64,000 nt of DNA from Thalia democratica (taxonomy: Eukaryota), in NCBI GenBank assembly GCA_965202585.1, contig OZ241826.1:79918001-79982000 (forward strand), given 5' to 3'. Shown here in pieces: positions 14,952-53,023 of this stretch; within the stretch, counting starts at the first letter, position 1; every line of letters starts with the position of its first letter. The translations under genes were made by a program, and so were the position numbers. The notes below the pieces were generated by a model. That model did not search any database and had not been told where the DNA came from. It saw nothing but the letters and a program-made list of their open reading frames with translations.

Positions 14952-15143
14952 TTACCCTGATTCATTAAGAGGTGAGCAAGGTGAATGGTGAGCTTCGAGG
15001 ATGAATAAGTACGACCCCAAGTGACGGTGAACGGAGGAAATGAGGGTGTGAGCGTGACCCAGTTTCATTTGCAACCTGTTCAAGCATGACTCCTCCCTAA
15101 TGAACTGGAGGGAGTGTCCATTGATGCCGTTGTCAAGAAATAT
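14952..15143 (-). CDS. SAMD11: copy 1 exon 14, end of SAM domain and stop (not in ORF track)
   Basis: IFLDNGINGHSLQFIREESCLNRLQMKLGHAHTLISSVHRHLGSYLFILEAHHSPCSPLNESG*; 192 nt, same length as copy 2. Confidence 0.9.
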   Translation of the reverse strand: MFLDNGINGHSLQFIREESCLNRLQMKLGHAHTLISSVHRHLGSYLFILEAHHSPCSPLNESG

Positions 15144-18100
15144 CTGTTGTCATGGTTACTTTTGCATATTTTTATTTTGTTTCGTGTTGTAGAACAAACA
15201 ACAGCTAAAAAATTTTAATTTAAACAAGATTGAAGTCCTTTTACTATTTAAGTTCTAGTTTTAAGTAAAAAAACATTTGACTACGTTAGAATTTAATTTT
15301 ACATACTCTTAAGAAGTTTTAAACAAAATTGTGTATTTAGAGTTAGATATATTTGACGCACTTGTTTATATTGCCCCAAATTGATTTCGTCTAAATATTG
15401 ACCGACTCTTTTACAACTCCATTTGCTCATTTCATTTGTAACTTTGTCAGCAGACATGAAAGATGTCCTGTTGTTAGTTTCACCCAACAATGAAGCGTTT
15501 TTTGTTGAAGTGTGAGACACAGGTTCAGTTTTATAATGTGTTTTATTGGTCAGAAGATTAGAGTTCTTAAAAGAAGCTCCTTCTAAAGAGGAGTTTCTGT
15601 ATAACAAAACAAATTTAGTTCATTTATAAATACATAAATTTATACCTAACGTACTATAAACTTACAAGTCAAAGAGTGAACCAGAAATTATTGGTTTTTT
15701 TGTTTCTTTTTTGAGTTTTCTGAAATTAAAAATTGTAGAGTTTTGTATCACAAAAACAATTTAGTTTAACACATTACTGCAGAAGAATTGTTTTTTACCA
15801 CATTAGCTTTACAAACTAAAAGTTGTATAAATATTTTTAATAAAGTGATACGAAGTATGCGTTTTTATTTTGTTCGACTATATCTATATTAATATTTAAG
15901 TGTATTACTAAATGAATTGTACAAAACCATACTTACATAGGAACGCTACTTGATCTTTTTACGTTCTTCTGTATTGATTTTTTAACAAAGGTTTCATTTT
16001 CATCGTTTGTTATCCTAAAAAAAAACTTGAAAAGTATAACGTTGTATGCTATCAAGTTAATTTAAAAGAAAAAAACTGAGTATATGTTTTTTAGCTTTTT
16101 AGTTATACTTTAAGCCGTATCAGTTGATACTATCTATGCTTTAAACTTATACACGGATTTATTTTTTATGAAAACTAAATATACTTTACAATTATAATCA
16201 ATATTTGCATTTTTTTAGGTTAATGTTTCATCTTAAAAAAATCTTAAATTAAGTTGAAATTAAAGTTTTAAAAACACAAAACTGCTTACTTGTCTGAAAT
16301 TTCAGCGTGATCTTTAACATCATTTGAGTTATTTTTCAGAATTTGTTCAAAAGATTTTAGTTCTTCTGATTGGTAAACTTCTTCTTCTAACTGAGACTTG
16401 CAGTTTACTTTAAAATTGTCAAGTAAATTTGGCGCCAATTGTCCGAATGCAGCTGCCATGTTCTTTACAAGATTCGACTGATCCTGCATCAATCTGTAAA
16501 CAAATAGTTAGTTAAAGAATACATTATAAGTTTTCAAAAATACTTTATGTTTAAATAAAGAATATTGTTGTTAGAGAACATGACTTAACTTTTTTTAACT
16601 AAAATTGTAACTCTAAATTACTTATAATATACATACATAAACAATTTTTTTAGGTTTATAATGGTATAAATTGTTTAAAACAGAAAATTATCTGCGCTTA
16701 GATATTGACGGAAACTTTATTTTGAACAATTTGCTGTTTTTTTAAAGGGCAACTGTGAGCAATTTTACATATAATAAAATAAAAATAAATTACTTACTTT
16801 TTATAGTCGAAGTTGATTGAACTTTCATTTAAATTCGGAAGAAAGTCTATAAAATCTGTTTGTTAATATTCGTAAAATCGTTATGCATATATAGTTGGTC
16901 AAAAATTTTATTTTAAATGTATGCTAAAATATAAGCAGGTTTCAAAATTACTCATTACTTATTTTAGTGTTTAAATACTTAAAAAAAAACCGTTTTCTAT
17001 TTTTGATTTCTTGTTAACAGTTGGATGTAATTCGTTTGCTTCTTCAATCAACTGATTCTGCAAGAAAAGAGTTATAATTAAATGAAAAAAATATGTATAT
17101 ACTTGTATCTCTATCTAACTAACTCTCAACCTGATTTTGTTTAAGGTCGTTCAAAGACCTTTTTCTAGAAGCTGTATCTTCGTTTGCTGCAGGACTTTTA
17201 ACTTTTTTATCAGTCGAACATGGAGATTTTCGTTGCATTTGCGACGGAGAAGCTCTGAATAAAAACTCTATTATTAAATACATACCCCTTAACTTCAAAA
17301 ACGTGAAACATTATCTAAAATATTTTGTTGTTTATCTTTTAAAGTTATAATTACTTTTAATGCATTTATTTCATGAAAAACAGACATAAAAAAATGTATA
17401 CATTGAATTACAAAGTGATAAGAGAGGTATATAGATTGGAAAGATCAAAAAATTATTTAAATAAAAAAATAAGCAACATACATTTTTCTAGACGGCAGAA
17501 CGCAAGTAAAAGCGGAATTTCTCGTCTCTGATTCGCTGATTTTGGCTAGCAACGGCGAGTTGTCGAAACCCATCAGTGAAGAGCTGGGCAGGTTGCTTGG
17601 CAACGAAACCAACGGTTGCCATGCAGTGACGTCATCATGATCTCCCCGCTGGTTGTTTATGGTGAAAGGGAAAATATGGGTGATTTTGTTTGGCGCGTCA
17701 TCCTCAGCAGAACTTGTCTGTTTGATATTTTTGCTTACTTCTAAAAATTAAGTAAATAAATTTAGACCGAATATTGAGTGTTTCGAAAGTTTAAATTTTA
17801 ACATTGTTACTTGACTCTTCTTTCTTTTATTTATTTATTTTAAAAGTAAAATCCTTAGTTTTTTAACTTTTATTTTATTTGTATGGAAAGCATTGTCGTT
17901 TTTTTTACTATTTTATAAGACAAAATTTATGTTAAAAACCATTAATTACACTATGTTAAAATGAATAAAAGATCATTGTGGTTTAAGATTGCTACAAAGT
18001 AAATAGTCTCACCCTGTTTTGTTGAGCGAAGAAAGCGATGTTCTTTAGACACCATTCACATTCGCATTCGTTCTGATGATGAATGATCACCGATTTTGAC

Positions 18101-21100
18101 ATGAGAGCTTTCAGACTTTTCCCGTGATGTCTGATGCTCCTCTTCCAATCCTTGGCAGTCTCCCTCCCGCTTATCGCTTGGAACTCGTTGGGGTACATCC
18201 AGTTCTGCTTGCCCCCGAGCTCGTACAGAATTGATTTGCCTGAAAAGTTACAAATAGTTAGTATAAATGTTTGTTTTAGCAAAAACTTTTGTACTATTGA
18301 ACAAATCTGAGATTGTTGTTTCTTTCAGTTGTTAATTTGACAATATTAAACGCACTATAAAAGGAATTATACTTAATTTTTTACGAAAAAAATTGAGATC
18401 AAAAAAAAAAAGTCTGTGTTCTTAAAACAAGCAGCTCACAATACTGTTGTACTCAATATTCCAGAGAAACACGACAGACTGCTAATTAACAAATTAAACG
18501 AAAATCGTAACTCGTTGTATAAGTTTGTAGTTCTCTCATTTTAAACTCGTACCAAGCTGGTTTTTATTGTTTAATAAACTGGAAATAATCCACCTACTCA
18601 AAGGTTTCAAATTTTTTGACATATTTACAGCTTTTTAAATCTTGATCGCTTACAACTATATTGTTTACTTTTAATTTTTTATTAATTTCTTATTATACTA
18701 CCCATTATAATCACGAAACTTATATGCTCATTGTTTGCTAACAAAGTAAAACCTGTTAATTTTGTGAGCTTTTAGATTTTGAAAATGCCATTAGTTAAAA
18801 AAGTTTTAAGTAAGCTAAAACTAAAAAAAAAGTTTTAAGAATTTAAGATGTAAAGACACTAAGTAATAAACAAAGAAACTTGATTTGCCAGTCTAGTTTA
18901 GATCGGTTGAGTTCAAAATTACAATGTTACTAATACAATTTACAGATAGAGACGGCACTCCGAGCAAAAATCGACTTAAACATGAAAAGAAAACTTCTCT
19001 AAAAAATCACGAGCGGCCTTATTGAATGGAATTTCACGTTCTGGTCAAACAAACGAAAAAAAACGAGGCGAAGCATAAGGAACAGTCTGCGTTGCGAGAA
19101 AGTAATTAAATTGCAACGAAATACTTTTGTGCGTAAGCATCTAGTGTGTTTTTTTTTTGCGCTCGTGATTTAACTTGCAGTCTGCTTTGCAACCTTTTGT
19201 TTGAGCTGTTGTCAATTAAAACATTTATTTTAAGCTAAACATGCTGTTCTTTTACGTTTTTTAGTTTTCAAATTCTGCAGAGGTTTTGTTTGAAACGGAC
19301 TTTGACTTTTATTATTTACTGTTGTTGATAATGTTTTTTTAAAACTACGAATATTTTATTTTAAATATGTAAAACAATATTGATACAATGTTTATGCATA
19401 CTTAAGACAAAGAGATATAACAGCTTTTACAAAGAAGTCGCAAAAATTCATTATTATTGAAATAAGTTTTTACATGCATTTATGTAAACTTAAAAAGTTA
19501 TTACGCTTAGGCTTTATTTGAAAAACAATTTTGGTAACTATAAAGGTTATTTAAACTTTTTTTTGATTTAATTATTTCTATAAACTTTATAATCAGCACA
19601 AATTCGTAAAGGACAAAAAAAAAGCTTAAACGTTTTATACTTTAAAATAAAAACTACTTTTTAATTTGAACAAAAATATAATTTACTGTTATAAAGCAAG
19701 GAAGTTAACTAGATAAAAAAAAGTACCCTATCTGAATAAATTTTTAGCAGCTTTGAACATTGCAGACTAATAAAAAACTAAACAAAAATAATTTTAATAT
19801 AGACATAATGAGAAACTTGTTTTTTAGATTTAAATAATAAATTCATAAAAATGAAAACTTGTTTAAACTATTCTAGTTTATAATTTGTTACTTATTTATA
19901 TATGCATTAAACAAATAACAAACAAATTCAAAATAATACATAAGCTAAACAAATATTTATTAATATAAACCCACCTTTGCTACCCTGGCTGAGTCTTGCG
20001 ATGTAGAGGAGGGCATTGTTGTCGCCGCAAGTCACCTCCAAAAACTCCTCTCCTCCTTCGTCCTTCTTCACTTCCACCTCCGAGCTGCTCACGTGACCTT
20101 TCGGCAGGTTCACCGTCCACCTGCAACCCTCCGTTGCCACATGGTGATGGCTGTTTGCCCCTGGAAACCGGTTTTGAAGCCTCATTTTGCTCACTGAATT
20201 TTCCATCAAATCTGCAAATGTTTAAACTTGCATTTAAACAGATTTCAATTTTAAGTTGAAATAAGTTTATATATTATTTTTTATGGTTTTATAAATAAAT
20301 CTATGTATTATTTCAGATCAAAATATTATTTGTTAAGCTTTATAGCCTGTTTTGGTTAATAGTTTTATGATCAGACTCACTTGTAATAATATTAGTAAAT
20401 TAAAATCTTGAACATTTAAGTTTTAGAGTGAGCAGCTAAAAATAATTACAAGCAACGTATGTTTCAAATACTCACTGACGACAGTTTAGTTTTTTTCAGT
20501 GAAAAGGCAAAACACTCGCAGGTTGCGATTCAAAAGCTTGAACGAAAAGGAAGCTCGTCAATCGATAAATTAGACACGCAGCTAATGGTGACCTCTAGCA
20601 ACGCTTCTATCGACGAAGGTTGGCATTAGCAACACACAACGAAGCAAAGAAAAAGCCAGATGAGCTGCAATGACGTGACAAAGGATTAAGAGCCGCGATA
20701 AAAAGAAGCAGCGACAGCAGCAGATAACCTCGAGTAGAACGAAGCGAATAACCGTGACTAGCTTTCAATGTTTGTATTTTGTTGCTCCCTGTACGAACGA
20801 AATCGAATGATTGCGGTGTCAACGCGCAAGCGATATACAAACATTGACGGTGCCTAGCGAAAAAAAAAGAAGAAGAGAACGCCGCTAGACGCTTTGTGGT
20901 AATTGAAATTTTTTTACTGCCGCTAGGTGTGACGTCATAATGCATCAAAAGTGCTCGCTCTCGTCACACAATAGGCTTTCCAGCTTTCTTTGTTATAAAG
21001 CGCCGCCCGACAGCTGAGGATCGGTAAATTGAACGACGAGATGCTTTTATTCATTATTTATCGCCGCGCCACATTCTGCTTCTTTTCGCTGCGGCTGTTT

Positions 21101-24100
21101 AAAACTCTCTCTCTCTCTATTGAGATGTGTGAGTTGAGTGGTGCGAGAATAATTACCGCCGAAACTTGCTGAACGATTGAACGGCAGATAAATAGCTGAC
21201 TGATCTCGCCGCGACACTCAGAGCTTCTAGTTGATTTCAGAGGCGTGTTCCGTGATTTAACGCTTTTCAAAAACACACATCGCGAGACAAGTCGACCTTT
21301 TAGTGTTTCAAAAATCTTAGCGAGGTGCAGCTTAGTTAATGGCTGTAGGTAGAGGGTTTTGCAAAACCTTTTAGCAGAGAAAAACTTTTGATATTTTTAT
21401 GCAGGCTTTTTTGCTTACTCGCAAATTTTTCTGTCATTCATTTTCGTTGTTAGCTTTCTTATTTTAGATATCAAAATACGTAAAATAATAAAAGTAATAT
21501 TTATTAGAAGCACAAGAACTTTTTGACTAGATCAATAAAATTAATCAAGCTTTACAAGTTTAACAAGAAATGCTCATCCATAATCCTAAATACACAAAAA
21601 GTCATCAACATGTTGGCAGTTGTCTACATTGACCTGTGTGCGAATGTCGCAAGCATATTTTTTGTTTGAAAACTACCAACAACAAAAGAACAAGAGATCT
21701 TCTTGCTGTTTCTCAATTAGTATAACTAATCACCTTCTCTATACATCAGCGTTGCGCAGTATCGGTTTTACAGCGGTGAAGATTGATTGGAACAAACAGG
21801 AAGGTCAACGCTAAACCGCGATGTCAGGACTTGGCACTAAAGTTACTGAAATCAGCTTTATTTAGCAGAATAGCAATTAAATACGCGCGAGGTTGTACGG
21901 TTGATCATTTGAATTTAAATTTGTTGAAAAACCATTGCGCTTGTAAAAGCTCGCGAGCCCGAAAAGCTTTGACGAGTGTAAGTTAACATGTGTAAGTTTC
22001 GTTTATATGTTCAAGCGGTTATTAACATTTATATATATTAAAAATCTGATTCATTTTCTCTAGTCGTTTATGTCACAAACGATTTCAAGCTTGAGAATAT
22101 TAAAACCGTTGCTCGCTTCAATTAATTAAAAAAAAAGCATAAATCAATTTTACAGCTGCAAAATTTGTTACACATATGCAAGGCTAATGGCCTTGCATAT
22201 CATAACAATTCATAACAATTTTTTTAGAAAATCATAGACGAATTAATAAAATGTTTAAAAATATAAATTATACATATATATATAGAAAAAATTGTACTAA
22301 ATATAAACGAAAGCTTTAATTTTGTATTGACTTTTTTATCATGTGCAATATACAGTTTAACAAAAACTAACTGTTGTTGTTAAGAGTAACTACTTTTTTT
22401 CCGTTGCTACTAGTAACAACCGAAGGCTGCTTACATTCTGTAACGGAAATCGTGGATGACAGCTCTGGTGATGACGTCATAGCGGAAGTTGACCTCTGTA
22501 GCGTAGAAACCAGCCGATGATGATTGAGCTGGTTGTTGCTGTGTAAAAGAAGAGAATCACGAACAAAATAAAATAAGTAAAACGGTGTTATAGTTAATTA
22601 AAAATTTAGTTGTAAAAAGACTGCTGACTAAATAAAAAATATCTTGATGAATAAAAAATTTGAATAACAAATACTTTTTTTTTGTTTTTAGGTAAAAAAA
22701 TTTTTAAGTTATACTGCAAGTAAAAGTTAGTTTTTAGTCTAAAAGCTGATAAAAACACGCTTTATTCTAATTATAATTTTACCGTGAAAACGTTGTGTTG
22801 TCGAACATTGGCATATTAGAAAATGGCAATAAACTTTCTTGCTTCTTGTTCAAGTTCATCAGGTTTAAAACTTGTAACCTGAAAGTTTTTAGTTTTAAGC
22901 AATACAAAACTTAAAATCTGTTTGTGAAAGTTTATAAACTTTCATTTATGAGAAAATCAGTTCATTGGAAAGGTTGGAAAAGAACAAAAATCAAATTTTA
23001 TTGTTTTAAAGATGTTTCCGCCTGCAAAATATTCAAATACTAAGCGACCACAAATAAAAACACAAATTAAATGAAATTAAGTTTTTGACACTAAATTAAG
23101 AACATAAATTAAACTAAAGGGAACTTCTTTTTTGCAAACAGCGTACCGGTTGTACAATCTAATTTTACATTCAATATTTTTGCTGTTACAACTCAACAAG
23201 TCAGCAGTTGTCATAGCAACCAGCCACACACGCGGCAGTAAAAACAAATCCAACGAGCCCACCACGTCGCCAAGTAAACAAGCTTCTTAGCAACGGTTGC
23301 CAAGTTGCGAGCTGCATTCAAGCAGATAAACGCTTGTGGTCTCTCGCATGGCAACCGAGCTGGCATGGTTGCTTGGCAACCGGGTCGTCCTGCTTTCAGC
23401 ACTTCCGCACTTTTAGTTAATCATCTTTGACGAAAATCACCGACGTCTGCGAAGGCGGCTTTAAGTTTCCTCCAGACGCGGTAAAGTATACCATATGTCT
23501 AAAGTTTCAAATTTTTTCTCAAGAAAATTTTTTTTGATGTAAATGTTTTCTAGGATTAGTTTTCTATAGTCTTTAGCAGCGTTATTTTAAAAAACACAAC
23601 TTGAATAGTTAGTACTACTTTGAAGTTAATAAGTTTATTATTGTCTAAAAATAGTTCAAGTTTATTTACTAGTACTTCATACTATCTTTTAAATAAAACT
23701 TGTGCCCGATTGAGTTAATTAGTTTTAAATTTTTCCCCCTAACTATAAACGCCTGTAGTAAATTTTATGGTTGTTAATTGGTTGATATGTTTGTCTTTTG
23801 ACCTGTAATATTAGAGTATAAATATATTTAAAGAACTACCACACAACAAAGTTAAATAATAAAACTTATTTTAAAGCAAACATTTCTTTATTTGAAAACA
23901 TTAGTACAATTTTTCGAAGTTTTAAAGGATTACAAACAACGAATTTTTTAATAGGTATTTTCAACAGTTGATAAGAGATATTACTAAGTTTTTGTTTTAC
24001 TTAGTTAATGAATAATTTGTTTAAATACTCACCAGTTAAACTGATTTGGGCCTCCTAACTGTAGCGGGTCGAACCCGGAAAGTTCATCTTCTTTTTGATG

Positions 24101-24307
24101 TTTAGCCCCATTTATCCCACCGAAATTAGAAGGAACTTGCTGAAATCCCCCAGGAAAGGGGTTACCAGGCAACATGGCTGCCGGGTTATTAAGCATCCAC
24201 ATACTGGCAAGGTCGGGTTGAGAAAAAATATCCCCGAACTCGGCACCTGATTGGCTTAAAATTGTCGATAAATTAGGAGAAATACCCGGAACTGCTGAAG
24301 AACCCAT
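14952..24307 (-). CDS. SAMD11: SAND + SAM domain nuclear protein, SAMD11/SAMD7-like, copy 1 (14 coding exons, 746 aa, intact)
   Basis: Manually spliced exons (minus): 24307-24033, 22878-22783, 22538-22372, 20211-19975, 18239-18013, 17717-17482, 17254-17131, 17057-16991, 16846-16798, 16493-16290, 16014-15937, 15719-15666, 15596-15362, 15143-14952. All introns are GT-AG, phases are compatible, and the total is 2241 nt with no internal stop. SAND with KDWK motif (LEVTCGDNNALLYIARLSQGSKG/KSI..PNEFQAISGRETAKDWKRSIRHHGKSLKALMSK..CECEWC) and C-terminal SAM (WSCKRVGQYLDEINLGQYKQ/IFLDNGINGHSL..LQMKLGHAHTLISSVHRHLG). The SAND text matches my recollection of long-isoform SAMD11; the symbol means 'like', orthology not tested. 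Confidence 0.88.
15362..15596 (-). CDS. SAMD11: copy 1 exon 13, start of SAM domain
   Basis: KWSCKRVGQYLDEINLGQYKQ, donor CAA|GTGCGT phase 0. Confidence 0.9.
18013..18239 (-). CDS. SAMD11: copy 1 exon 5, C-terminal half of SAND domain (KDWK)
   Basis: PNEFQAISGRETAKDWKRSIRHHGKSLKALMSK; acceptor ttttcag, donor GTGAGA. Confidence 0.95.
19975..20211 (-). CDS. SAMD11: copy 1 exon 4, N-terminal half of SAND domain
   Basis: EEFLEVTCGDNNALLYIARLSQGSK; acceptor ttgcag, donor AAG|GTGGGT; phase 1/1. Confidence 0.93.
23200..23420. promoter_or_regulatory. module C, intron-1 cluster of RFX X-box-like palindromes
   Basis: gttgtcatagcaac (23208), gttgcttggcaac (~23368) and several half sites; homologues at 1493-1790, 10230-10512, 35070-35320 and 41385-41462. 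The X-box consensus GTNRCC(N0-3)RGYAAC is established. Confidence 0.55.
24033..24307 (-). CDS. SAMD11: copy 1 coding exon 1 (MGSSAVPG...FNW)
   Basis: ATG at 24307, donor TG|GTGAGT; near-identical paralogous exon at 40391-40665. Confidence 0.8.
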
Positions 24308-27199
24308 ATTTTAAATATTTTTGTTTAAACTAAAAGTGTTATTTTGTTATTTGATACCTGTAGGTGATAAGTAATTGTTTGTAATTTAAAAAAGTATTCT
24401 TCGCAAGGTAAACTTTATTTCTTAAACATAAATTTTATAGTTTGCAAAAAAAAGCAATCTGCTTAAAATTATTTTTTTTTACAGTCTTTATTATGATTCT
24501 CAGTTTTATGTTGTTTCTATCAGGAACAAAAGTAGTAATGACTAACTTAAAAATAAGTATAATTTACCAATAAATTAAATTAATATAAAGTAGCTGTCGT
24601 TTTGAATGAGCCATAGTAACCAAGTAATTCATAAAAAACAGTAAATTGTAAAATTTTTACTAAAAATTGCTTTAAAACTATGTGAGAAAGATTTTGAAGA
24701 AGTTTTACATTTATAACAAAATATATTTCTTTTCAATGCATTATTCTTAACACCTCGAACCTAAACACTACCTAAACAACAACTTATTTAAAAATTTCAA
24801 ATTATAAAGACCATTCTTACGCTTATGAATTGATTAAAAAAGAATTAATAAAAAATTATACTTTAATAATCGGTTTTACAGTTACTTACTTATAAAAAAA
24901 CAAGGCACTGTAAATGTGCAAATAAAGTTAAGTAAGCTTAAGGTATCTCAGATACTTTTAAAAATAATATCTAACCGCATCCAACCTCTTTTAAAAGAAG
25001 ATATTTTTTTTGAAAAATTATAGCCCTTTAGACTTGAGACAAACGCGCTCCTCTCATCATTTCGTTACCACAGCAACCGGTTTCGACCGTGGCGTTGACC
25101 GGGGAGGAGGCACCGTGGAAGACAGATTGCGATCAGCTCCGTTGCCTGGCAACTGGTTGAGGTGAAGCGACAACTAGTTAAATTTCTGTTGCGGTTACAA
25201 ACCTTGGACCTTGGCGAAACAGGCGAAATCGTGTTAGCAGAAGCGCGCTGTGTAAACACCGAAATCTAAGCGGCGCGTTGTGCGAAAAACGGCAGCTTTT
25301 TTTATTGTTTGTGTGTTTGCAATAAAACACGCAACCGAAAACACACCGAGCAAAAATCGTGACCCTTTGTGCTTTTAAAGCTTTTTCTTTTCTAAATACA
25401 AAAACAGCGACGGCTACTAACGAGCTCAAAATTAGCGAGAGAAGAAATCAACAGCGCGTTGTGTGTGGTAGCTGTCTGCTAAAGCGATTTGAAAATTGCG
25501 TATTATGAGGTTAGCGGATAAAGAAGCGAGGTGAAACTAGCGATGTCGGCGACAGATTTGCTTTTTGTTCGGAAACTAAAGTGAAGGCGACAGTTTTCGG
25601 CATACCACTTGTCTGTCTCGATTTTTTGGTTCGCCTTCCCAAGTAATTTCGACACGCTGATTGTTTTTTAAATGATTTCTGATGGAATACTGCGTGTAAA
25701 AAGTGAAAGAAATGCTTGCCACCAGATAATAAGAACTTAAAAACTTTATTGTTTGTTAAAAAAATAGTAGTTTTTATAAGTAGACTATTCAATAATGTAT
25801 TAGTTAGAATTAAAACAACTAAAAATTAAGCAAACATAGGAATTTCCTTGCTATATGAGCATTTTAAAAAACTTTTACAAAGCGCAAGGAAAAAATAAGT
25901 TATCAAAGAAATCAGTATGGCTTCTGCTAGCATGCAAGTGGCCATCAGAGACTATGACTTTATGTAAGCCAACTTCCAAATGCAAAATAAAATAACAAAG
26001 CTTCTATGCTGCCAGAAAAACGAGACTTCTAAAAGGTTGATAACTCGGCGCCTCTTATTAGCGGCATGTGAGGAGCTGTCTTCACTTGGAAGCCATAAAA
26101 TGAAAGCTCGAGTTCAATTGATTCTTCCTCCATCATTCACATACGACTTGCCCTCACCTAATTTCGCTGCTTCTTATCTTGCTGAGATTATCCCTTTTCG
26201 CTTTTCGTTCACTCGCAAGCTGTTGTCACTCGTTAAACTAGGGAAAAGGCAGCTAACTGCTGAGATAACTTCGCTTTGTGCGACAACGCTTTAAAAGGGG
26301 GCGGTTTTTAAGGGTCTCTAAATCTCGCTGGTGTTCTGGATGAATTGTGTAGCTTCGTTGAGACTTTTGAAGAGCCCGCAGTTCAACAACCCTTTGAATA
26401 TTTTTACGGCGTCGTTATAAAAAAGACAATTTTTTTCTTTCTTGATTTTTACGCATACTTTTATTTACTCAGTCTACTTATTCGATGCATAATTAATTTA
26501 CAATCTTCGTTTGTCTACCAATGAACATTGCTACAAAGTTATAGAATATTATAAAGTTGTTAGTTTAGGCTTTTAAGTAAAGGTATTATAAACATTCAGT
26601 TTATTAAACAGTTAGAATTAGTTCAAAAAATGTATATAAATAAAGATATCAATTAATTTTGTTGTTAATAAAATTAGACTTTTTAAAATTATCAAAAAAC
26701 TGTTTGCTACACAATGTCTAACTGTTTACTGTTTTAGTATTATTTTATTTTAACAATTAGAACAATTATTTTGTAATCACTTATTTTATAGATAAGAGGA
26801 GCTAGTATTTATATTTCGGATACATCGATTATTAATAGTTTACTGTATAGTTTTTAATCTAACAGTAAAGTTAGAATAAAAAATTATTGTTTGAATCTAT
26901 AAAAAAATTTCCAAATCAAATTAGTTGTTTAGTTTTCATTTAATTGATGTTGAAAAATAGTTAAAAAATTTTAAGTCTCGTTTTTTAAATTAGTTACAAA
27001 AACTGCAAAAAAAAATATCAAAAAATTTTAAGTATACATCTTAAGTTGTTGTTCATACTATTTATAAAACAAAAAGTATAGTTGATCGAATTAACTTAAC
27101 AAATCTAAACCTAAAGTTTCAAACAACGGAAAACATATAATAAAAATAACAAAACAATGTGTTTCAAATAAAAACTTTTCAAACCAGCAAACTGCTCAA

Positions 27200-39027: not shown

Positions 39028-39120
39028 CTTGCGAGTGAATGTAACTCGAAAGAGGGGATAATTTCAGCGAGATAATAAGCAGCGAAATTAGGTGAGGGCA
39101 AGTTGTATGTGAATGATGGA
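39028..39120. promoter_or_regulatory. module B core, conserved non-coding element or 5'UTR exon end (3 near-identical copies)
   Basis: ccatcattcacatac(a/g)acttgccctcacctaatttcgctgct at 26130, rc 39028-39120 and 63666; frameshifts between copies exclude a shared ORF. Confidence 0.55.
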
Positions 39121-39545
39121 CATCGACTTTGTTTTGAACTCACTTCAGCTTTTCTTTTAAGCAAAAGCTCCTTATGCCGTTAATTAGAAATGCAGCAAAT
39201 TAGCAGCGGATTTTTGCTGGCAGCGGCGGTTTACTGTTGGCACGATCGTCATAAGAAGCTCTTAGGTGTATTTCGCGCACGTTAGTAACCTTCCACACAC
39301 ACTCATTTCAAAAACTTTTATTTTGATTCTTGTCAATGAGAAAACTTTTGTGGCTGATACGTTTTTCTTTTTCTTTTCGCATTTTTTAAACTTAAATGAT
39401 CGTAAGTAAGAGAGGTATTAGAACATTAATAGCTAAAATTTTAAAGCAAAAACTATTTTCAAATCATTTTAAACTAATTTTGGTAAACACCAATTAGTGC
39501 ATGAAGCATCAAACCTTTCTTTAATTCCTAATGACAAAAAATCAC

Positions 39546-39636
39546 TGAAATACAGACGAAAAGCTTCATGTTAATTTCCGAACACAAAGCTCGAAACGTC
39601 GCCGACCTCGCAGGCTTTCACCTCGCTTTTTTATCT
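39546..39636. promoter_or_regulatory. module A, ~90-bp conserved CpG-rich element upstream of exon 1 (4 copies)
   Basis: Copies at 5371-5460, 25517-25586 (diverged), 39546-39636 and 63156-63233; core aggtgaaagcctgcgaggtcggcgacgtttcgag..tgtgttcggaaat...tgaagcttttcgtctgtatttca. Confidence 0.55.
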
Positions 39637-40390
39637 GTTTATAACCGCATCAAGTTTTCAACACGAGGTGCTACCACACACCATGCGTTAATTACCCCTT
39701 CCCGCCAATCGAGCGCTCGTTAGATAGGCCTAAAAAACAAAAGAAAAAATAACAATTATTTAAACTTTAGTGAATTTACGCTTCGTTTGTTTATTTCACA
39801 TTGAAGTTGTTCGCACAGCGTCGTGCCGATATTTCACTGTTTACACCGCACTTGCTGATGTGAGGTCAAGTTTCTTATTTTCACTGGTGATTGTTGTCAA
39901 AAGAAAATTAACTATCAACAACGACCGCGCTATTTTCCTCGACGCAGTGATAGCCGCCACTGTCGTAGGTAATTTGCGGTCGTGATTGATCGTAACCGTC
40001 GTCGGTTGTCGCCGTGGCTGTTATTGGTTGCCATGCATACAAAGTATTTTAAAGGTCACGTAGTTTAAATTAGCTGTTGTTGTATTAAGCTTTTGTTTTC
40101 AGTTTTGACTAATCAGGAAGTTTAGGTATGATAATAACGACAAAGTTATAAATAATTTTCAAAGCACTTTTAGTTAATTGAACTTATTACAAAATTGCTC
40201 TATGTTAAAATCTAAAATGAAAATTTTTTTATATAAAACATATTTTTAGTTATAAAAAAATATCTTGGATTAGTATTTTTAAGTTTGTTTTAGAAACATG
40301 GTTAGTTAAAAACTGGACATAAAATAGTTTAAAGATACTAAATATATAACTTTTCTTTTAAACAGACTTAAAATTATACAAAATATTTCA

Positions 40391-40665
40391 ATGGGTTCTT
40401 CAGCAGTTCCGGGTATTTCTCCTGATTTATCGACAATTTTAAGCCAATCAGGTGCCGAGTTCGGGGATTTCTTTTCTCAACCCGACCTTACCAGTATGTG
40501 TATGCTTAACAACCCGGCAGCTATGTTGCCTGGCAACCCGTTTCCTTGGGAATTTCGCCAAACTTCCTCCAACTTCAGTGGAATGAATTGGGCTAAGCAG
40601 CAAAAAGGTGATGAATTTTCCGGGTTCGACCCGCTACAATTTGGAGGTCCAAATCAGGTTAATTG
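40391..40665 (+). CDS. SAMD11: copy 2 coding exon 1
   Basis: MGSSAVPGISPDLSTILSQSGAEFGD..., donor TG|GTGAGT. Confidence 0.8.
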
Positions 40666-43600: not shown

Positions 43601-46600
43601 GAAAAGTTGTAAATTAACTAAATGACTAAATGAACATTATTGATATTGATTAAAAACGAAGTAATTTTTCTTCTACAATAGCTTAATGGCTTGCGCAACT
43701 TATTATTTCAAAACATGTTTTTTCTTATTTATTTTAATGTTAAGACAGATCCCTAAAAAATTTTACCAAAAAAGTTTATGTATTTATCCTTGCAGATTTT
43801 AGTTTAGAAGTTAACATATTGCAGACAGGTTGACAACTACGTAAGTAAAAAAAAAACATGCTTATGTTTTTTGTAAAAAATACCTGTTTTTGTTCAGAAA
43901 TGTGTAAAAAAAAAATTCATAGTCGCGATAAAAAATAATGAAAGTAAACTTGAGTATGTGACAAGCAATTGCTTTAGACACATATGATTATGACGTCACC
44001 AAAAGACGTTGTCTGATGTGCGGGCAAATAGCGAACGATAGGCACGCAACGTAGTTAATTTGCAAACAAAAAATTGATGATTGTTCACAACTCGCGCGTT
44101 GAAACCGCAAACATTCTACTTTGTTTGTTTACTAGCAGCAGTGAAACATAAACAAGGCTTTAAGCCTCACTAAAGTTTTTTAAGACTTGCTATTTAAAGC
44201 TGTCACCAGCGACAGTAGTAATTATCGCTGCCATGGCTGTGTAACTTTTAATTATCGTTACTAAATCCAACTGCCGTAACGGCGATTTACGGCTTAGCTG
44301 CTGTCTCTCATGCGTTGCTGTTGGCAACCTTCGTCGACAGAAGCGTTGCTTAAGATCTACATTGGCTGCGTGTCTAAATCATCGATTAACGATTTCTTAC
44401 CGTTTAATTTTGAATTTGATTTTAGCGTGTGCTGTTTTGACTTAACAAATTAAACCTTAAATTTAAGTTTTATCGAAATACCTGTGTTGATTAAAAATTC
44501 GACTGTCGACGAAAAGGTTTGTCAATAAACAATTTGCTCAGAGGAGTTTGAAAAACTAGCTGTATAGAATTGATTTAAAAAAATAGTTGTAAATAACATT
44601 ATATTTAATTACTTTCTCACTAGCTTTCAAATATTTTTAATCTATTTCAAGTTTTAATTTCTGTAAACAACAATAATTATGAAGTGTTTGCTTTGAAAAT
44701 ATAGTTTCAAGGCAATTCAGACTATGAAAACTCAAATTATTATAAGTGAGTTTTTAAAAACTTAAGTTTCGAAAGTTCTAATCACTAAAGTTACACAATT
44801 AAAACTTGAGCTTCGAGGACTAAATTGTTCCATTTTTATTTTATGACTCAAATATATTAGTTCAAATTGTTTCGGTCCAAAAATCAAAATATGAAGCTGC
44901 GTATATGCGACAAAATAATTTTCAATTTTTCATTTTATTTAACTTTTTAAGTTAAATTAATATTAATCTAGTGATTTTTTTAAATTTTATGCGATAATTA
45001 ATTTATATTTTTCAAAAAGTGTTACTTTTTAAGTTCTGTTGTTTTTACCTTGTTAAAATTCTAACACTTTTATTTACTTCGCACAAGTAATTTTACTGAG
45101 TTATTTATATGCACAAAACACAAGTTAATGAAGTAAAAAATTTTAAACTTATTTTTTATACAAAAATTAAGAAATAAGACTTTTTTAAATACAGAATATG
45201 TTTTACAAACAATTTAAGTTGAACCTATACGAAGAATCAGAACAAATAATAACTTTGTTATTCCTAGAGTCTTTTCTAAAAGTTTAATAAATGAAATTAT
45301 TAGTATTTATGTAAACTTGTTCACAATAAGATTATAATTTTCAACTTTTTACATTGTAAGAGTAATAATACTACATTCGTTCTAATTCTTGCCTATATCA
45401 ACGGTCAAAATCACAAAATTATATTTACTTTTAATTTTCTAATGCTTTAAAAAAAAAAAAACAAATTATTTAAATCTAAAACTTGATCACGTGGCAGGTG
45501 AAACTGCAAGCAAACTGAAGCCTCCCGGTTGGTTGTTAGGAGCAACCAATCATCACCACGTGGCAACGGAGGGTTGCAGGCGGACGGTGAACCTGCCAAA
45601 AGGTCACGTGAGCAACTCGGAGGTGGAAGTGAAGAAGGACGAAGGAGGAGAGGAGTTTTTGGAGGTGACTTGCGGCGACAACAATGCCCTCCTCTACATC
45701 GCAAGACTCAGCCAGGGTAGCAAAGGCGAGTTTTGAAAATTATGCTATTTTATTAAAAAACCTATAAGAGTTTTAGATGTTTTTTATACCAAAATTATAA
45801 GGTTTTATATTTAGTCTTAACGTTTACAACAGGAGTAAAAAAGATTTTTTTTAAAAAGCATATGTTTTTTGTTTGTTATTTCGTTTTTTTACAAACAAGT
45901 ACAATAAATTGTAGCAATCTCATTTTAGTTTTAGCCCAGGGGTCGGCAAACTGCGGCCCGCGGGCCAATTGCGGCCCGCGAGCACGTTATTTTTTTGTCG
46001 GAATGCGGCCCGCGAAAGAAAATTTTGTGGCTCGCTGAGCAAAAATATATTTCAAGTTAAATTTTTTCGGGAATTTGATTTAATTTGATTAGTTTGGTTT
46101 TAAGTCTCTGTATAACATTCTAAAATAATTAGAAGAAATTACTGCTATGGTTTAGAAATGTAAAAAATACAGATAGCATTCTAACAGGATATTTTTCTCA
46201 GTTTCATAATAACTTCTTTTTTACAACAGCAAGTAATTATCTGAAGAAAAAGTGTAAAGAGTGCATAGATTTAATAGATTAGTTATATAATACCTATTTA
46301 TTAAATAAACTAAATGCAACTGTTTTCCATTTTGTACAAAAGTAATGCACAGTAATTAATTAAAGTGTCATTTCTTTATAACTTAAACATTTTTTTCAAT
46401 ATTTTTTATACCGAAGTTTCTTTTATAGATTTTTTATTTGTAAATGTTATATTTTAGTGTAAAAACATTTAAAATAGCATAGTAATAAGAAATAAGGCTT
46501 ATTTGAATTTTGTTTTGACACATTTTATTTTTTTAAAAGTTTTCTTTGCATTTTAAATTAATTTCTATGCACACCAACTTTAAAAGATGCTCATTTTATA

Positions 46601-49600
46601 AACTACTTTTTATTTAATACTTCAATTAGTTTAAGTTTACTTTATGCATAATTTTCTAACATTGTTGTTTCTACATGTGATATCTAAATTTGTACAGCCA
46701 CATTTAAATAATATATATGACATAAATTAATGTAGTTTTTGTTAGGTAAACATTTTCAACTTTCAAACATTATTTTTGTCAAACTAAGTTAATTTTTATG
46801 CCTTGCATATCAATATTTACAATCGCTGTTTTTAGGAGCTACCTATCTAATATAAACTAGATTTAGGGATGGTAAATTTATTAAGCTTGTTCATTGTAAT
46901 CAAAACAACTAAACATTGCCACACACTCAGACTATCACTATTTGAAGACTTCAAACCTTAGGCCAACTAAATAATTTTTTTAATTTTTTGGCTAGAACTG
47001 CTTTTTGTATACAAAAATATCAGAATTTTTTTTGTTAACTCAGGCTGGCTTTTTTGCTTAAAAGAGCGGCAGATTAAACTTATGATGTATGTTTTGCTTA
47101 ATCCACATTGTTAGTTTGAGTTATAATATATGTAAAATTTTAAGTCTTGCAGCTGATATAATTCAAAATATTATTTATATTATTGTGTAATTTAAAAGTG
47201 AACAATCAGTGTTGCTAAAAAACTTGAATCCCGGAAAAGCTTTGAATTTAAAAATTCATACTTATTAACTCTAGAAAAAAACTTTAATTTAAGATTTTTG
47301 AAAAAACCTGGAATTTCAAACAATTTTTACATGTAAAGTAATGAAAATTCGATTTGACAAAAAAAAATTACCAAATAAATATTTTTTTATTAAAAGTTAT
47401 ATTAAAGTAGCTTAACTATATTTTATAATATTCCTACATTTTTTAAGATATTTTTAGTAACTTAAACTAAACTTTATAGTAAAAATAAAAGAAAGAATTG
47501 TACTTCCATAATTGTGCATTGCACCTTTACTTGTAAAATTTCACCGATTGTTGTTCTTCGCGTCGGAACTAAAACAAAAAATTTTAGTAAAATGTCAAAG
47601 TTATTAAAAACATCTATAATAAAATTCTCAAATGAGCAATAGTTTTTCTACCAGTGCTCTCATGTTAAAAGATTGATTAAAGTCCTAATTTTATTTATGC
47701 GACTTTATAACCTTAATGCATTTCCTAAACACGACTTCTGGTTGTCATTGAAGAAATAAACAAAAGTATTTCATTACTGCCAACATATAATCTTTAAAAA
47801 AGTTTTCAATTATAAACGGTGTCTAATTTTAAGTAATAAATTTTGCTACTTTATAACTTGCCTTAACAATATTTGTCTGATCATTCTGTAGTTACTGAAT
47901 ATAATCATGTGCTTTGTTGGAACTGACTTGGGTGATTTGTTTTTTTTTATCGTTTCTCGCAATAACTTCTTAAGTCCTAACTAACGTTTTTTATTCCTGT
48001 ACTTCGTCTTATATTTTACAATTACTATTTTTAAATGCAATATTGTTATTGCAGATAAAGCAGTGTTTTATGCTTAATAAGAAATAAGTTTTTCTACTTC
48101 GCTAATGACTCAATAAAGTTTTATACTTTTGTAAAATTTGTTTAAGAAACTTAATTGTCCATTCCAGCTGAATTATATTTTTTTTGGCATGTAATTTATT
48201 TATGTTAATAACCTTCGTTATTTCTCTATGTTGTGAACTTTATTTTAACTGGGTTGCTACACAAAAAGGCAATTTTAAAAGTTTGAAAACTCAGGTGTGT
48301 GTGAAACTTTTATTTCAAACACTACTTATTAAAGCTTGATTAACAACTATTTATTAGCTTTTTCAACTTTTAATAAACTAAGGCTGGTTTGATACAACTT
48401 AGACATTTTTGTTTTTAAATGGCAACCATGTAAAAGACTGATTACTAATAAGATATCTTATTAAGGTATTCGAGAATTAATTATGTTAAAGAATTTGTTT
48501 TAGCTTTCTGAAGTACAAACAGGTACTAATTTTGTTACATTAACTATGTAACTACTAAATTTTTGATGAGTGTAAATTATTTAACACGCAAAAACATTTT
48601 TTGAAGTAAATATTCTTAGAAATATGAAAAAACGGTTGATAATATAAGAAATGTATAAAAGTAACCCATAAATTGTCTTTCAAGTTAAGTTTTTATAGAG
48701 AGTTAGGTTGTAAGTAAAATTACAAAAGTGTTAAGTTTAACTTATTAAGTGCTTATATAAGTACATAGTTATTAACACTTAAGTATATTAGTCAATGTAA
48801 ATTATATTTTAATAAATATTAATTTAAAAAGGCATTCTATGTATAACTAAAAGTCATTTTAAATAATAAAGTGAATTAAAGTAAAACTTTTCTCTAGTGT
48901 GTCTAAAACTAAAACCCAAAAATTATTATATGTCACTAAAACTAAAACTGCGGCCCGCGAAGACTTTGGAAACTTGAAATTTGGCCCGCGACCACCAACT
49001 GCCTGCCGACCCCTGTTTTAGCTGAAAGCGTATTTTCAAATTTTATATAAGCTTTTAGTTGAAAACAGATTTAAAAATGTTTCAGAAATTTTGGTGCTAT
49101 TTTAACTTCTCAGACGACAAAACGTTTTAAACAACTCATGCGTTCACAACATTTATGTTTGTTTATTTTTTCCAGCTGTTTTAACAAAAAAGGCAACATT
49201 GGCACGGATTTGAAACGCACACAACGACGTTTCTCCTTTAATTTAATTACCGACAATCTTTCGGGTTTTGCCTTAATTTTTAGAACAACTGTACTGCAAG
49301 CTTATGGTTTTTACTAGCTTGTTAATCGTTTGTCTTTAATGTTAAATTTATTTTATAAACTTTACCAAACTTATTTTTCAATTCAGTTTTGTAGTTATAT
49401 GGTTTTAATAAGATCTATAGAGCAGACTTGTAGGTTTTTAAATACACAAAATCACTGCTAAAAATCCTTCTTAGAGTTTTTTTAAAGTACAAAAACTATC
49501 CCTTAAAAATTATTAGTCCTAAATGTTTGCCAATCCGTCAGGTAAATCAATATTATATGAAACGGGGGGCAAGCAAAGCTGGATGCACCCCAACGAGTTC

Positions 49601-52600
49601 CAAGCGATAAGCGGGAGGGAGACTGCCAAGGATTGGAAAAGGAGCATCAGACATCACGGGAAGAGTCTGAAAGCTCTCATGTCAAAATCGGTGATCATTT
49701 ATCATCAGAACGAGTGCAAATGTGAATGGTGTCTCCAAAACTTTACTTTGTCAACTGATTTCGTTAGTTTTTGATAAACGTTATTTGATAAGGTTTTACA
49801 TCATTTAATGTTCAGAAGAAAACTTTTATGATATGTAATGCACATAAAGTAATATAATTAATCTTTCAGGTAACTTTAGCTAAATATTTAGATGCACTTT
49901 ACTTAATTCAATATTACTTTTAATGTTGTTTTAGATTATTAAAAAACGTTTTTATAGAAAATACTAAATATTTGAAAAAGTAAATTTAAATCAGGGTAAA
50001 TCTACTGAAGACAGGAATAAAATAAGCCACATATTTCCTTCTACCCTCAACAACCAAAACCAAGATGAAGTAGCTACCTGGCAATCGTTGGTTTCGTTGT
50101 TAAGCAACTTCAACATATCCCCGTCACCCGTGATGGGTTTCACCCAAGAAAACTCCCCTTTGTCGATACAAAATTCAACAGCTAATACAAACTCTGCTTT
50201 CACTTGTGTCCGTCCATCAACAAATAAGTTAGTTAATTTTTATTTAACTTTAAAAAAATAAAGCCATTGTATTTCTTAAGTTTAAAAGAAACTTCAAAAA
50301 TCAATGTTTACTTTACCAATTTTTACTTAATAATTTAAACTAATATTTCAGAGCTTCTCAAAACGCAGTCAAAATCGATTTGCAGCAAAATTTTTCACCG
50401 TTAAAACCCGCAAAAAATTATGAAAAAGTTCAGAATTCTTCTGTAAAAAATAAATTTTCACGCAAAAGACCAAATACCGATACTGACCAAGGCATTGGTA
50501 AATATCAGGTAGGAATTTAGCATACTTAATAATGTAAAAAAACTAAAATTCTTATACCAATTTTAATGTTACAGATGGTGTCAAAAATTGATTTTGTTGA
50601 AGGGTATCCAGCAGCTAAAAAGAAGTCAATTCCTAAAAACGGTTAGTTTTAAAGTTTAAACAAACGAAAGCCTAAAACGTAGAAAAAACGTTTTACGATA
50701 CTTTTTATATCATCAAGAACAATATGTGACTAGTGCCTATTTTTTTGCCTTAAAATATTCAAATGTTTCCTTAATTAAATCTATAATAAACAATAAACAA
50801 TAAAATTCATTGTTTACTATCGATGGCATAAAACATCTCAACTTTTTTTATGATGGCCGCAACAAATACTGCCTATATTAAATCTATGATTCGATATTTG
50901 GTGTTTTAAAATTATTGTAAAATTCAATCATTTGCAGAATATATGTCGAATTTAGATGAAAATTCAGTCACCTCTGAATACAACACGTAAGTAATACTAT
51001 TACTTTTACTTTATCTATTGTATAATTATTCAAAGCCGACATTTTAAATATTCAACAATAATTGTTCAAAGTAAATATTTCCATCAACGTTTAAGCTTTT
51101 AAATTTACATTTAAATCGGTGACGTCGTTTATTTTTAAATATATTGTTTGAGTAAAGTCAAAATATTCTCGCACAGAATTTATTTTTTGTAAATTTAATT
51201 GTGTAAAAGTTTTATTTGATTATTGGCTTGTAATAGTTTCTATTTAACGTAAGTAAAAACGTTCTACAAGAAAATAAAGCTATTGTAACAATATTTCAAA
51301 AGAAAAAATATCAAAAAGTTAAAACTTCTTTAAGTTTTTCAAGTGTGAATATTTAAAGAATTTTTATAGTGTGTTCTACTGTATCAATTTGTACTATATA
51401 ATTGAGAAAAAAAAACATTCTTAACAAAAAAACATGAATTGAAGTCATTATGTTATTTACAAAATAGTACTTAAAAACATTCTTGTATCATATTGTTTAA
51501 AAAATAGTGTTGTAATCTATTAAAAAATAAGCTACTAATACAATAACACGCGATGTTCAAATATTTTAACAATTTTCTTTACTAAAACTATAAAACAGTG
51601 CGATTATGTACATTAAGTCAAATTATATTAAATTATTTACAGTTTTGATTTATTTAAAGATTGATGCTGGATTAGTCAAATCTTGTAAAGAACATGGCAG
51701 CTTTATTCGCACAATTGGCGCCAAATTTTCCTAAAAATGTTAAAACAAATTGCAAGTCTCAAATAGAAGAAGATGTCAGCCAATCAGAAAAAAGGTATTC
51801 TGATGAATTCAACCAGAAAAAATCTTTGAAAAACCTAATGGATACAGACTGTTGTGAACCCCAAATAATAAGGTTCTTGAACAATTATTTAGAAGTAAAA
51901 AAATTCTGCAAATTAATATAAAACTAGTTGAAAAAGTTTAATTGTTTTTCATTAAAAAACTTTTAAATCACTACTTTTTTGAACTGATGTTTAATAAAAA
52001 ATATTGTCTAAATTTTACAGCAAAGACGTGAAAAATAAAAGATTAAAAGAACTAGCAACCAAAAAAAGTACAAAAAGATCAAGCAGTGTTCCATTGTAAG
52101 TTTAAACCATAATCACATTGTAATACATACACAAATGAAAAAAAAATGGGTATAATTTATAAAACTCACATACATTTTAATAACTTTCATAATAAAAAAG
52201 TCTATGGTATACATATAAATTATCTATATAAATCATCATCTAAAACAAAAATTAACCTTAATTAGTACACCTTGTTAGTTTTATAAGTAGTTTCAACTTT
52301 TCAGAAACCAAAATGAGCTCACAAAAAAACCAAGAATTTTTCATTCACTGAACAACTTGTAAGTTTAACTAAACTGATTATTATTAGATTTATAAAAGAT
52401 GTGTGTCAACCAGTTACTTTTTGAAAAACAGAAACACTTTTTCGGATTCAGTTTCTGAAAATTCAAACAATCTATTTTCGTTCAAACAACAAGTTGTCAA
52501 ACATCCTTGCCAAAACCCAACAAAAGCTGCTTTGACATTCCAAGAGATAATAGAAGAATGGAGTCTCAAGTCTACTGACAAAGTTAATATAAATAAAACA

Positions 52601-53023
52601 TTTAAAAAATCCGATAAAATGAGTAAATGGAGTTGTGAAATAGTCGGCAAGTACTTAGATGAGATCAACTTGGGACAATATAAACAAGTAAAATTTTAAA
52701 ACTCTGAATTCACCATTTTAATGATACTTTTCAGCCGTATGTAATATTATTTTATAACTTAATAATCTCTGAGAAAAGATGTTTACTTTTATTTAAAAAC
52801 ACAGATTCTTTTATAATTACCATGACAACAGATCTTCCTTGACAACGGCATCAACGGAAAATCCCTGCCCTTAATGCGCGAAAAATCGTGCTTGAGTATC
52901 TTGCAAATGAAACTGGGTCACGCTCACACCCTCATTTCCTCCGTTCACCGCCACTTGGGGTCGTACTTCGTCATCCTCGAAGCTCATCATTCACCCTCCC
53001 CATCTCTTAACGATTCAGGGTAA
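40391..53023 (+). CDS. SAMD11: SAND + SAM domain protein, SAMD11/SAMD7-like, copy 2 (14 exons; in-frame TAG at 51673-51675, so truncated allele or young pseudogene)
   Basis: Exons: 40391-40665, 41749-41853, 42156-42301, 45498-45725 (GC donor), 49542-49762, 49995-50227, 50352-50508, 50575-50641, 50938-50986, 51660-51872, 52021-52095, 52305-52358, 52432-52687 (alternative in-frame acceptors at 52399/52414), 52832-53023. Every intron phase equals copy 1. The only lesion found is GAT TAG where copy 1 has GAT CAG. Confidence 0.8.
45498..45725 (+). CDS. SAMD11: copy 2 exon 4, N-terminal half of SAND
   Basis: Same peptide as copy 1 over the last ~58 codons; donor AAG|GCGAGT. Confidence 0.9.
45937..49015. 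mobile_element. non-autonomous hAT (Charlie/Buster-like) DNA transposon, 3.1 kb, in intron 4 of copy 2
   Basis: TIR caggggtcggca...tgccgacccctg, subterminal gcggcccgcg repeats, 8-bp TSD ttttagcc/ttttagct; no transposase ORF seen. Confidence 0.9.
49542..49762 (+). CDS. SAMD11: copy 2 exon 5, C-terminal half of SAND (KDWK)
   Basis: WMHPNEFQAISGRETAKDWKRSIRHHGKSLKALMSK; donor TTC|GTTAGT. Confidence 0.93.
52432..52687 (+). CDS. SAMD11: copy 2 exon 13, start of SAM (downstream of premature TAG)
   Basis: KWSCEIVGKYLDEINLGQYKQ, donor CAA|GTAAAA; start chosen by homology to copy 1. Confidence 0.75.
52832..53023 (+). CDS. SAMD11: copy 2 exon 14, end of SAM (downstream of premature TAG)
   Basis: IFLDNGINGKSLPLMREKSCLSILQMKLGHAHTLISSVHRHLGSYFVILEAHHSPSPSLNDSG*. 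Confidence 0.85.
   Translation: MFLDNGINGKSLPLMREKSCLSILQMKLGHAHTLISSVHRHLGSYFVILEAHHSPSPSLNDSG

Follow-up and report, generated by a model that had tools for sequence, protein, structure and literature searches.

Near-identical exon islands shared by two diverged subfamilies of a SAMD11-like gene array in Thalia democratica

The window analysed here, 64,000 nt of the Thalia democratica genome (C1:79918001-79982000; positions below are counted from its first letter), contains two SAMD11-like genes, copy A and copy B, each encoding a SAND and a SAM domain. The 5' ends of the two genes face each other across a 12.7-kb spacer. Although saturated at synonymous sites over much of their coding sequence, the two copies share short, near-identical islands in five exons. 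We find that A and B are members of two old subfamilies within an array of at least 14 copies, as opposed to a closed two-copy pair, and that the islands are probably explained by interlocus gene conversion among array members of both subfamilies, combined with purifying selection on the domain cores. An original prediction, made from the sequence of the window, had proposed conversion between the inverted arms of an old palindrome. Homogenisation between diverged copies is indeed the best explanation for most of the islands, in view of the collapse of the deep branch in island trees, the contrast between fixed and polymorphic sites, the mosaic introns and a reversal of distances in exon 1. 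The palindrome itself was not borne out.

Islands in two diverged genes of a larger array

The two genes, the islands they share and a control exon are listed below, where GC3 denotes the G+C content of third codon positions, and pS and pN the proportions of synonymous and non-synonymous differences. Exon labels E2, E7x and E10y were assigned in this analysis, and the boundaries of exons 2-3 and 6-12 are predicted.

14955-26246, minus strand: copy A, A-type SAMD11-like (SAND+SAM) gene, from the last codon before the TAA stop (14952-14954) to the match with the conserved 5' non-coding exon/promoter (26129-26246)
39002-53020, plus strand: copy B, B-type SAMD11-like gene, with a TAG in E10y and a GC donor after exon 4
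19975-20149, minus strand: exon-4 SAND block of A (HHHVATEG...SQGSK), G+C 0.57, GC3 about 0.7
45551-45725, plus strand: exon-4 SAND block of B, 4 differences from A
18082-18192, minus strand: exon-5 SAND core of A (PNEFQ...KSVII), holding the KDWK motif
49589-49699, plus strand: exon-5 SAND core of B
24200-24307, minus strand: exon-1 island 1 of A, codons 1-36 from the ATG, GC3 0.2-0.4
24056-24109, minus strand: exon-1 island 2 of A, codons 67-84
40391-40498, plus strand: exon-1 island 1 of B
16361-16492, minus strand: exon E10y of A, an AT-rich island, pN and pS both about 0.1
51661-51792, plus strand: exon E10y of B, with an in-frame TAG at 51673-51675
14982-15071, minus strand: exon-14 SAM core island of A (QMKLGHAHTLISSVHRHLGSY...)
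52904-52993, plus strand: exon-14 SAM core island of B
15362-15457, minus strand: exon 13 (E13) of A, the N-terminal half of the SAM domain, used as control; pN 0.07, inter-subfamily pS 0.4-1.0, not homogenised

A direct count over the exon-4 block reproduced the figures first reported for it: A and B differ at 4 of 175 nt (two synonymous and two non-synonymous differences, W>R and S>N), and the final 110 nt are identical, a run with a chance of ~1e-8 even given a background identity of 85%. The G+C content of the block is 0.57 in both copies, compared with 0.283 for the window and ~28% for the 802-Mb genome. The near absence of change described for the other cores was also recovered, with 2/111 nt differing in the exon-5 core, 1/78 nt in the first 26 codons of exon 1, and a 50-nt identical run in exon 14 (15025-15074). 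A blastn comparison of positions 10000-33500 with 33500-58000 yielded 13 short matches of 74-95% identity, all but one of which are exon-sized pieces of genes A and B; the introns and the spacer are unalignable. Identity stops exactly at the exon-4 donor as well as inside exons 4, 5 and 14, in keeping with the abrupt losses that had been described.

The expectation of a saturated synonymous background was likewise confirmed. Windowed NG86 (Nei-Gojobori) estimates between A-type and B-type copies give a pS of 0.7-1.0 in E2, the first 6-12 codons and the end of E5, E7x, E13 and the start of E14, compared with 0.02-0.15 in the islands; the KSILYE codons that open exon 5 reach 0.80. Because conserved codons adjoining the islands are saturated at synonymous sites, protein-level selection cannot account for the islands. 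Their distribution also departs from the proposal that DNA-binding and SAM cores were homogenised while the linkers diverged, as the N-terminal half of the SAM domain (E13) is saturated and the non-domain exons E1 and E10y are homogenised. One further island lies outside the coding sequence, in the non-coding 5' exon/promoter segment, where A (26129-26246) and B (39002-39120) are 88% identical and share a conserved donor-like AGGTGAGG.

Pfam and tblastn searches support the SAMD11-like identity given to the genes originally. The SAND domain (PF01342) is encoded by exons 4 and 5, of which exon 5 alone is recognised with E = 6.5e-15 (55 bits versus a cut-off of 22) and exon 4 supplies the N-terminal part (E = 3.6e-4). 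All copies carry the KDWK motif as KDWKRSIR. The SAM domain (PF00536/PF07647) is split across the last two exons, either of which alone falls below the Pfam cut-off (E = 0.005). In tblastn the two exons match the SAM domain of P0029 (E = 1.6e-6 and 9e-8). This 718-aa protein shares the SAND-to-SAM domain order, and its own SAM domain passes Pfam at 3.8e-12. Vertebrate proteins named 'sterile alpha motif domain-containing protein 11' carry PF01342 and PF00536/PF07647. As P0029 and the vertebrate SAMD11 proteins share both Pfam families in the same order, 'SAMD11-like' is a fair name for copies A and B. The genome's best match to P0029 is located at C1:52116761-52117471 (74% in the SAND exon), and this copy at C1:52.12 Mb is probably the conserved SAMD11 orthologue. 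Genome-wide there are ~25 SAND loci, including clusters at C2:86.27-86.57 Mb and C2:15.95-16.03 Mb.

All eight coding segments examined in copy A are open. Copy B, by contrast, is probably a pseudogene, because it carries an in-frame TAG in E10y, where every other copy has CAG (Gln), and a GC in place of GT at its exon-4 donor (45726).

A whole-assembly search with the exon-4 block identified at least 14 copies at 94-100% identity, ten of them in C1:79.91-80.19 Mb and the rest at C1:82.06 Mb, C2:22.45 Mb and on contig C96, with more distant relatives elsewhere. We compared the 200 kb around the window, using eight complete copies. Six of these (A, C0, C3, C5, C6 and C7, referred to as A-type) have introns that are mutually alignable at 77-89%, and the remaining two (B and C8, B-type) align to the A-types in exons only. 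The array also holds many fragments, and copy orientations are mixed. The exon-4 block of C6 (C1:80082641-80082835, ~164.7 kb on the window scale) is consensus apart from a TAC>TAG nonsense codon. Both stop-bearing copies, B and C6, still hold the islands. Two short interspersed repeats were noted in passing: one at 21588-21714 is found at least eight times outside the gene copies within the surrounding 264 kb, and one at 18992-19159, in intron 4, has a 10-fold excess of contig depth in all public runs.

Within this array B is not the nearest copy to A. The exon-4 block of A matches six other copies at 97-98% identity and B at 95%, eight copies being nearer to A than B is, and over the islands the distance from A is 0.072 to B and 0.071 to C8 (among the farthest) compared with 0.052 to C6. 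This makes it very improbable that A and B are the arms of an old two-arm palindrome that convert each other, with GC-biased repair enriching the tracts. Such a palindrome would fit the head-to-head arrangement of the two genes, and an ancestral A/B pair may have converted before the array expanded, but no inverted arms exist outside the exons and the partners are numerous and variously oriented.

The G+C content of the islands bears on the same proposal. The exon 4, 5 and 14 islands are GC-rich, as had been stated, with a GC3 of 0.68 against a mutational equilibrium of ~0.15-0.3 (~0.3, as in the introns, when estimated from private changes), which would agree with GC-biased repair. However, all coding third positions lie above this equilibrium, GC3 is 0.53 in the islands compared with 0.55 in coding sequence outside them, and two of the islands, E1 and E10y, are AT-rich (GC3 0.35, range 0.2-0.4). 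No other gene with long exons was found in the window, and the control for GC3 consisted of the non-island exons of the same genes. Given that island and non-island GC3 are alike and that two islands are AT-rich, GC richness is a general property of these exons and not a mark of converted tracts, and the claim of GC-biased conversion does not stand for the islands at large. Private changes in exons 4, 5 and 14 are mostly strong-to-weak (G/C to A/T), 12 versus 1, as mutation bias predicts; only private changes were polarised, and no family-wide substitution was seen. GC-biased repair may still play a part in the SAND block alone.

Homogenisation between copies and constraint on sites

Pure nucleotide-level constraint would treat the islands as functional DNA or RNA elements (regulatory, small-RNA target, splicing or a second reading frame) with no exchange between copies. 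It can be distinguished from homogenisation by the shape of the trees: constraint shortens all branches proportionally, while homogenisation erases old branches and spares recent ones. In maximum-likelihood trees the internal branch between A-type and B-type copies is 0.0125 in the islands compared with 0.23 in non-island coding sequence (18-fold shorter), while the median terminal branch is 0.035 in the islands and 0.047 outside. Hence the deep branch alone is missing in the island trees, contrary to what constraint predicts. At third positions, 3 of 212 in the islands are fixed between subfamilies and 56 polymorphic within them, compared with 52 fixed and 92 polymorphic of 241 outside (Fisher p = 1.4e-6). 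Variability within subfamilies is thus 0.26 in the islands versus 0.38 outside, near neutral, and in exon 4 the pS among A-types (0.10) is matched by an intron p-distance of 0.10-0.14. In E10y, pN and pS are both ~0.1, alike within and between subfamilies. This exon is homogenised without visible protein constraint, a pattern expected of copying and not of constraint. Constraint would, in addition, require five separate elements across five exons, and we consider it unlikely as an account of the islands. The evidence in its favour comes from the exon-4 block and from X-box-like motifs in or near exons of the locus, both described below.

Exchange was also apparent among the A-type copies, where sliding-window pairwise distances along the gene form a mosaic. 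The distance between C0 and C6 is 0.03 over 26500-26240 and ~0.2 elsewhere, and that between C0 and C3 is 0.03-0.05 over 24681-21822. C7 is remote from every other copy (0.25-0.45) apart from the stretch 20232-18900, from exon 4 to the intron that follows, over which its distance drops to 0.05-0.17. C5 and C7 hardly differ across the junction of intron 4 and exon 5, and C0 is near A in introns (0.13) yet the most distant A-type in the exon-4 block. This mosaic demonstrates that exchange between A-type members occurs, including through their still-similar introns. Several significant runs were returned by a GENECONV-like test of the A-type copies, aligned without gaps; as the alignment is a rough 16-kb MAFFT alignment and the test is sensitive to rate heterogeneity, we relied on the sliding-window distances instead.

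A further comparison was provided by contigs reached via predicted protein fragments in ENA marine metagenomes (Tara Oceans and others), which cover exon 5 (L030), exon 4 (L031-L035) and exon 1 (L036-L054). In a genome-wide search their introns reach no more than 72-80% identity with any copy here. The same metagenome loci recur in up to 8 samples, with alleles 98.8-99.6% alike. We infer from these sequences that the contigs belong to a related species. In public runs the islands are present in a second labelled organism and in marine metagenomes; contigs are fragmented (~100-600 nt), paralogues pile up, and depth is concentrated on exons 4 and 5. One contig, L034, carries a B-type 5' half of exon 4, at a distance of 0.29 to B/C8 and 0.49 to the A-types, which places the subfamily split before the species split.

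In the exon-1 islands, the distance between the A-types and B-types of this genome (0.087) is smaller than that between its A-types and those of the other species (0.124; bootstrap P = 0.012). The 30 codons between islands 1 and 2, where the A-type/B-type split is retained, show the reverse, with 0.171 between A-types and B-types and 0.091 between the A-types of the two species (P = 0.0004); here B and C8 fall outside a clade of both species' A-types with 95/90 support. Exon 1 has no fixed species differences. This distance reversal, which constraint does not predict, supports conversion, since it is the signature conversion would be predicted to leave. The related species appears to hold a mosaic family too, as its paralogues L036 and L044 share 95% identity in the 2.1 kb preceding exon 1, 87% in exon 1 and 73-79% in intron 1.

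Recurrent conversion may be compared with one or a few old chimera events (unequal crossing-over or exon replacement in ancestors) followed by birth-and-death. Chimeras could account for the star-like island genealogy, with terminal branches as long as those outside, and for the weak pairing of B and C8 within the islands (93/93 support, branch 0.011), where B-C8 pS is about equal to their flank divergence. Nevertheless, five sub-exonic islands would require several double exchanges, the 5' edge of the exon-4 island differs by ~20 nt between B and C8, and the A-types carry many independent mosaic tracts of differing ages. The other species has B-types as well (L034), but in their exon-1 islands B and C8 group with the A-types of this species. 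On balance we regard the chimera explanation as improbable.

Several observations weigh against interlocus conversion as a complete or current explanation. The islands were delimited from the A-type by B-type comparison itself, making the count of fixed differences partly circular; the comparison of within-subfamily polymorphism and the exon-1 cross-species test are free of that circularity. Terminal branches are as long in the islands as outside, which means that homogenisation cannot be shown to continue today and may have taken place before the most recent duplications. Cross-species evidence from exon 1 is of moderate strength (162 and 90 sites), and the second species is inferred from metagenome contigs. 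Finally, the cross-species pS of the exon-4 block, 0.074, is not above the 0.10 found among the A-types of this genome. Unbiased conversion cannot slow divergence between species, and the block therefore needs an extra force.

The frozen exon-4 SAND block

A single 175-nt exon-4 consensus is common to 11 aligned copies of this genome and 5 metagenome contigs. All 5 foreign contigs share it, with 0-7 private changes each, and neither the species nor the subfamilies are set apart by any fixed difference. The cross-species pS of the block is 3-4 times below the intron divergence (~0.22-0.28), and also below the exon-1 pS (~0.2). This silent-site invariance across species and subfamilies is the one unusual feature of the locus. 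It had been suggested at the outset that core exons equally invariant across species would point to constraint at the DNA level. This holds in part for exon 4, where the consensus is the same with introns 72-80% identical, and the shared consensus means that conversion alone does not explain this block; in the exon-1 islands the distance between species exceeds that between types. The extra force acting on the exon-4 block is either selection on synonymous sites or biased fixation (e.g. GC-biased conversion). Within the block, codons that end in A or T vary no more than those that end in G or C, which, like the unchanged consensus, is in favour of constraint here.

RNA structure was considered as the basis of the block and rejected. 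Its minimum free energy is -52.1 kcal/mol compared with a shuffle mean of -52.2 (z = 0.02), and the fold is therefore ordinary. Known RNA genes were rejected too, since neither Rfam matches at gathering thresholds nor tRNAs were found across the window. RFX X-boxes were also considered as the conserved element and rejected, since none is complete inside any island. X-box-like motifs (GTNRCC N0-3 RGYAAC) do occur in or near exons, at 24161, 25141, 25064, 23368, 20588 and 17592 in A and at 40525 and 44314 in B; among them, a palindromic GTTGCCTGGCAAC is present upstream of A and within exon 1 of B.

A separate conserved segment was observed in intron 1 of A (23170-23500, minus strand). This GC-rich (~0.5) non-coding patch is kept in 6/6 A-types with a nucleotide diversity of ~0.045-0.05 compared with 0.16 gene-wide. 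Its indels are not multiples of three, GTTGC/GCAAC half-sites are frequent, and an exact X-box-like GTTGCTATGACAAC is located at 23207-23220. No counterpart was found in copy B. The patch may be an intronic RFX-type enhancer.

As a speculative proposal, which we hold to be unlikely, the 175-nt exon-4 block, and perhaps the exon-5 and exon-14 cores, would constitute a functional nucleotide-level element whose synonymous sites are kept constant in 14 or more paralogues, in both subfamilies and in two or more species. It would be maintained via DNA- or RNA-level selection (e.g. on an exonic regulatory or small-RNA target site), or via strongly biased conversion in which the array serves as its own proof-reading template.

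Proposed mechanism and relation to known systems

Interlocus conversion, the explanation we favour, would proceed as follows. The A-type and B-type subfamilies would have separated anciently within the SAMD11-like array. Non-allelic conversion would then have copied short tracts of exons 1, 4, 5, 10 and 14 between subfamilies, erasing old divergence in these tracts at synonymous and non-synonymous sites alike. Inter-subfamily tracts are limited to exon pieces, most likely since non-homologous introns cannot support heteroduplex; exchange between A-types extends through introns as well, as their mosaic distances show. Purifying selection would keep the SAND and SAM cores almost without amino-acid change, and in the exon-4 block an additional fixation bias would maintain the consensus, even in a related species. 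That intron divergence restricts conversion to exons is a known principle (PMC3966223). As the exon-4 island ends at the donor, conversion mediated by cDNA was considered as the main route, and was rejected on the basis that the first 6-12 codons of exon 5 are saturated and most island edges lie inside exons.

The locus is thus a large array of recombining copies of a chromatin-regulator-like gene (with SAND DNA-binding and SAM polymerisation domains) in a marine animal, and not a palindrome. The array offers a clean natural example of conversion between old paralogues narrowing to small islands of retained homology. Unless the islands are masked, trees of these genes, and ages based on their synonymous divergence (dS), would mislead badly. 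The frozen SAND block, for its part, is a concrete case where conversion could be distinguished from synonymous constraint or biased fixation.

Like the long isoforms of vertebrate SAMD11 and the tunicate SAND+SAM protein (Ciona LOC100176298), the window genes encode a KDWK-bearing SAND domain followed by a C-terminal SAM domain, and in both an intron interrupts the SAND domain after ...QGSKG. Identity to the canonical SAND+SAM proteins is ~50-60% within the SAND domain. Unlike SAMD11 and its Ciona counterpart, the window genes belong to a lineage-specific expansion, with ~25 SAND loci in the genome.

Primate Y/X ampliconic palindromes have long arms that are >99.9% identical through non-coding DNA. 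Inverted genes and homogenised sequence are common to those palindromes and the present locus, but here only exon pieces align, and partners are many. In families that evolve by birth-and-death under purifying selection, such as histones and ubiquitin, synonymous sites are left diverged. The array resembles these families in its mixture of intact copies, fragments and stop-bearing copies and in its strongly conserved protein cores; the difference is that the synonymous sites are the homogenised ones here.

The closest parallels are cases of concerted evolution by interlocus conversion in C. elegans, namely the head-to-head hsp16 pairs, col-12/col-13 and fog-2/ftr-1 (PMC3966223; for theory see PMC3924837). 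As in those cases, near-identity tracts occur in diverged paralogues and, owing to the loss of intron homology, fall mostly in exons; the copies lie close together, some of them inverted, and tract and flank phylogenies disagree. In contrast, exchange in the present array links two subfamilies whose divergence elsewhere is saturated and takes in at least 14 copies, the islands are sub-exonic (50-175 nt) and distributed over five exons, and the SAND-block island is additionally frozen between species. The process is well known, and the SAMD11-like family is a new instance of it.

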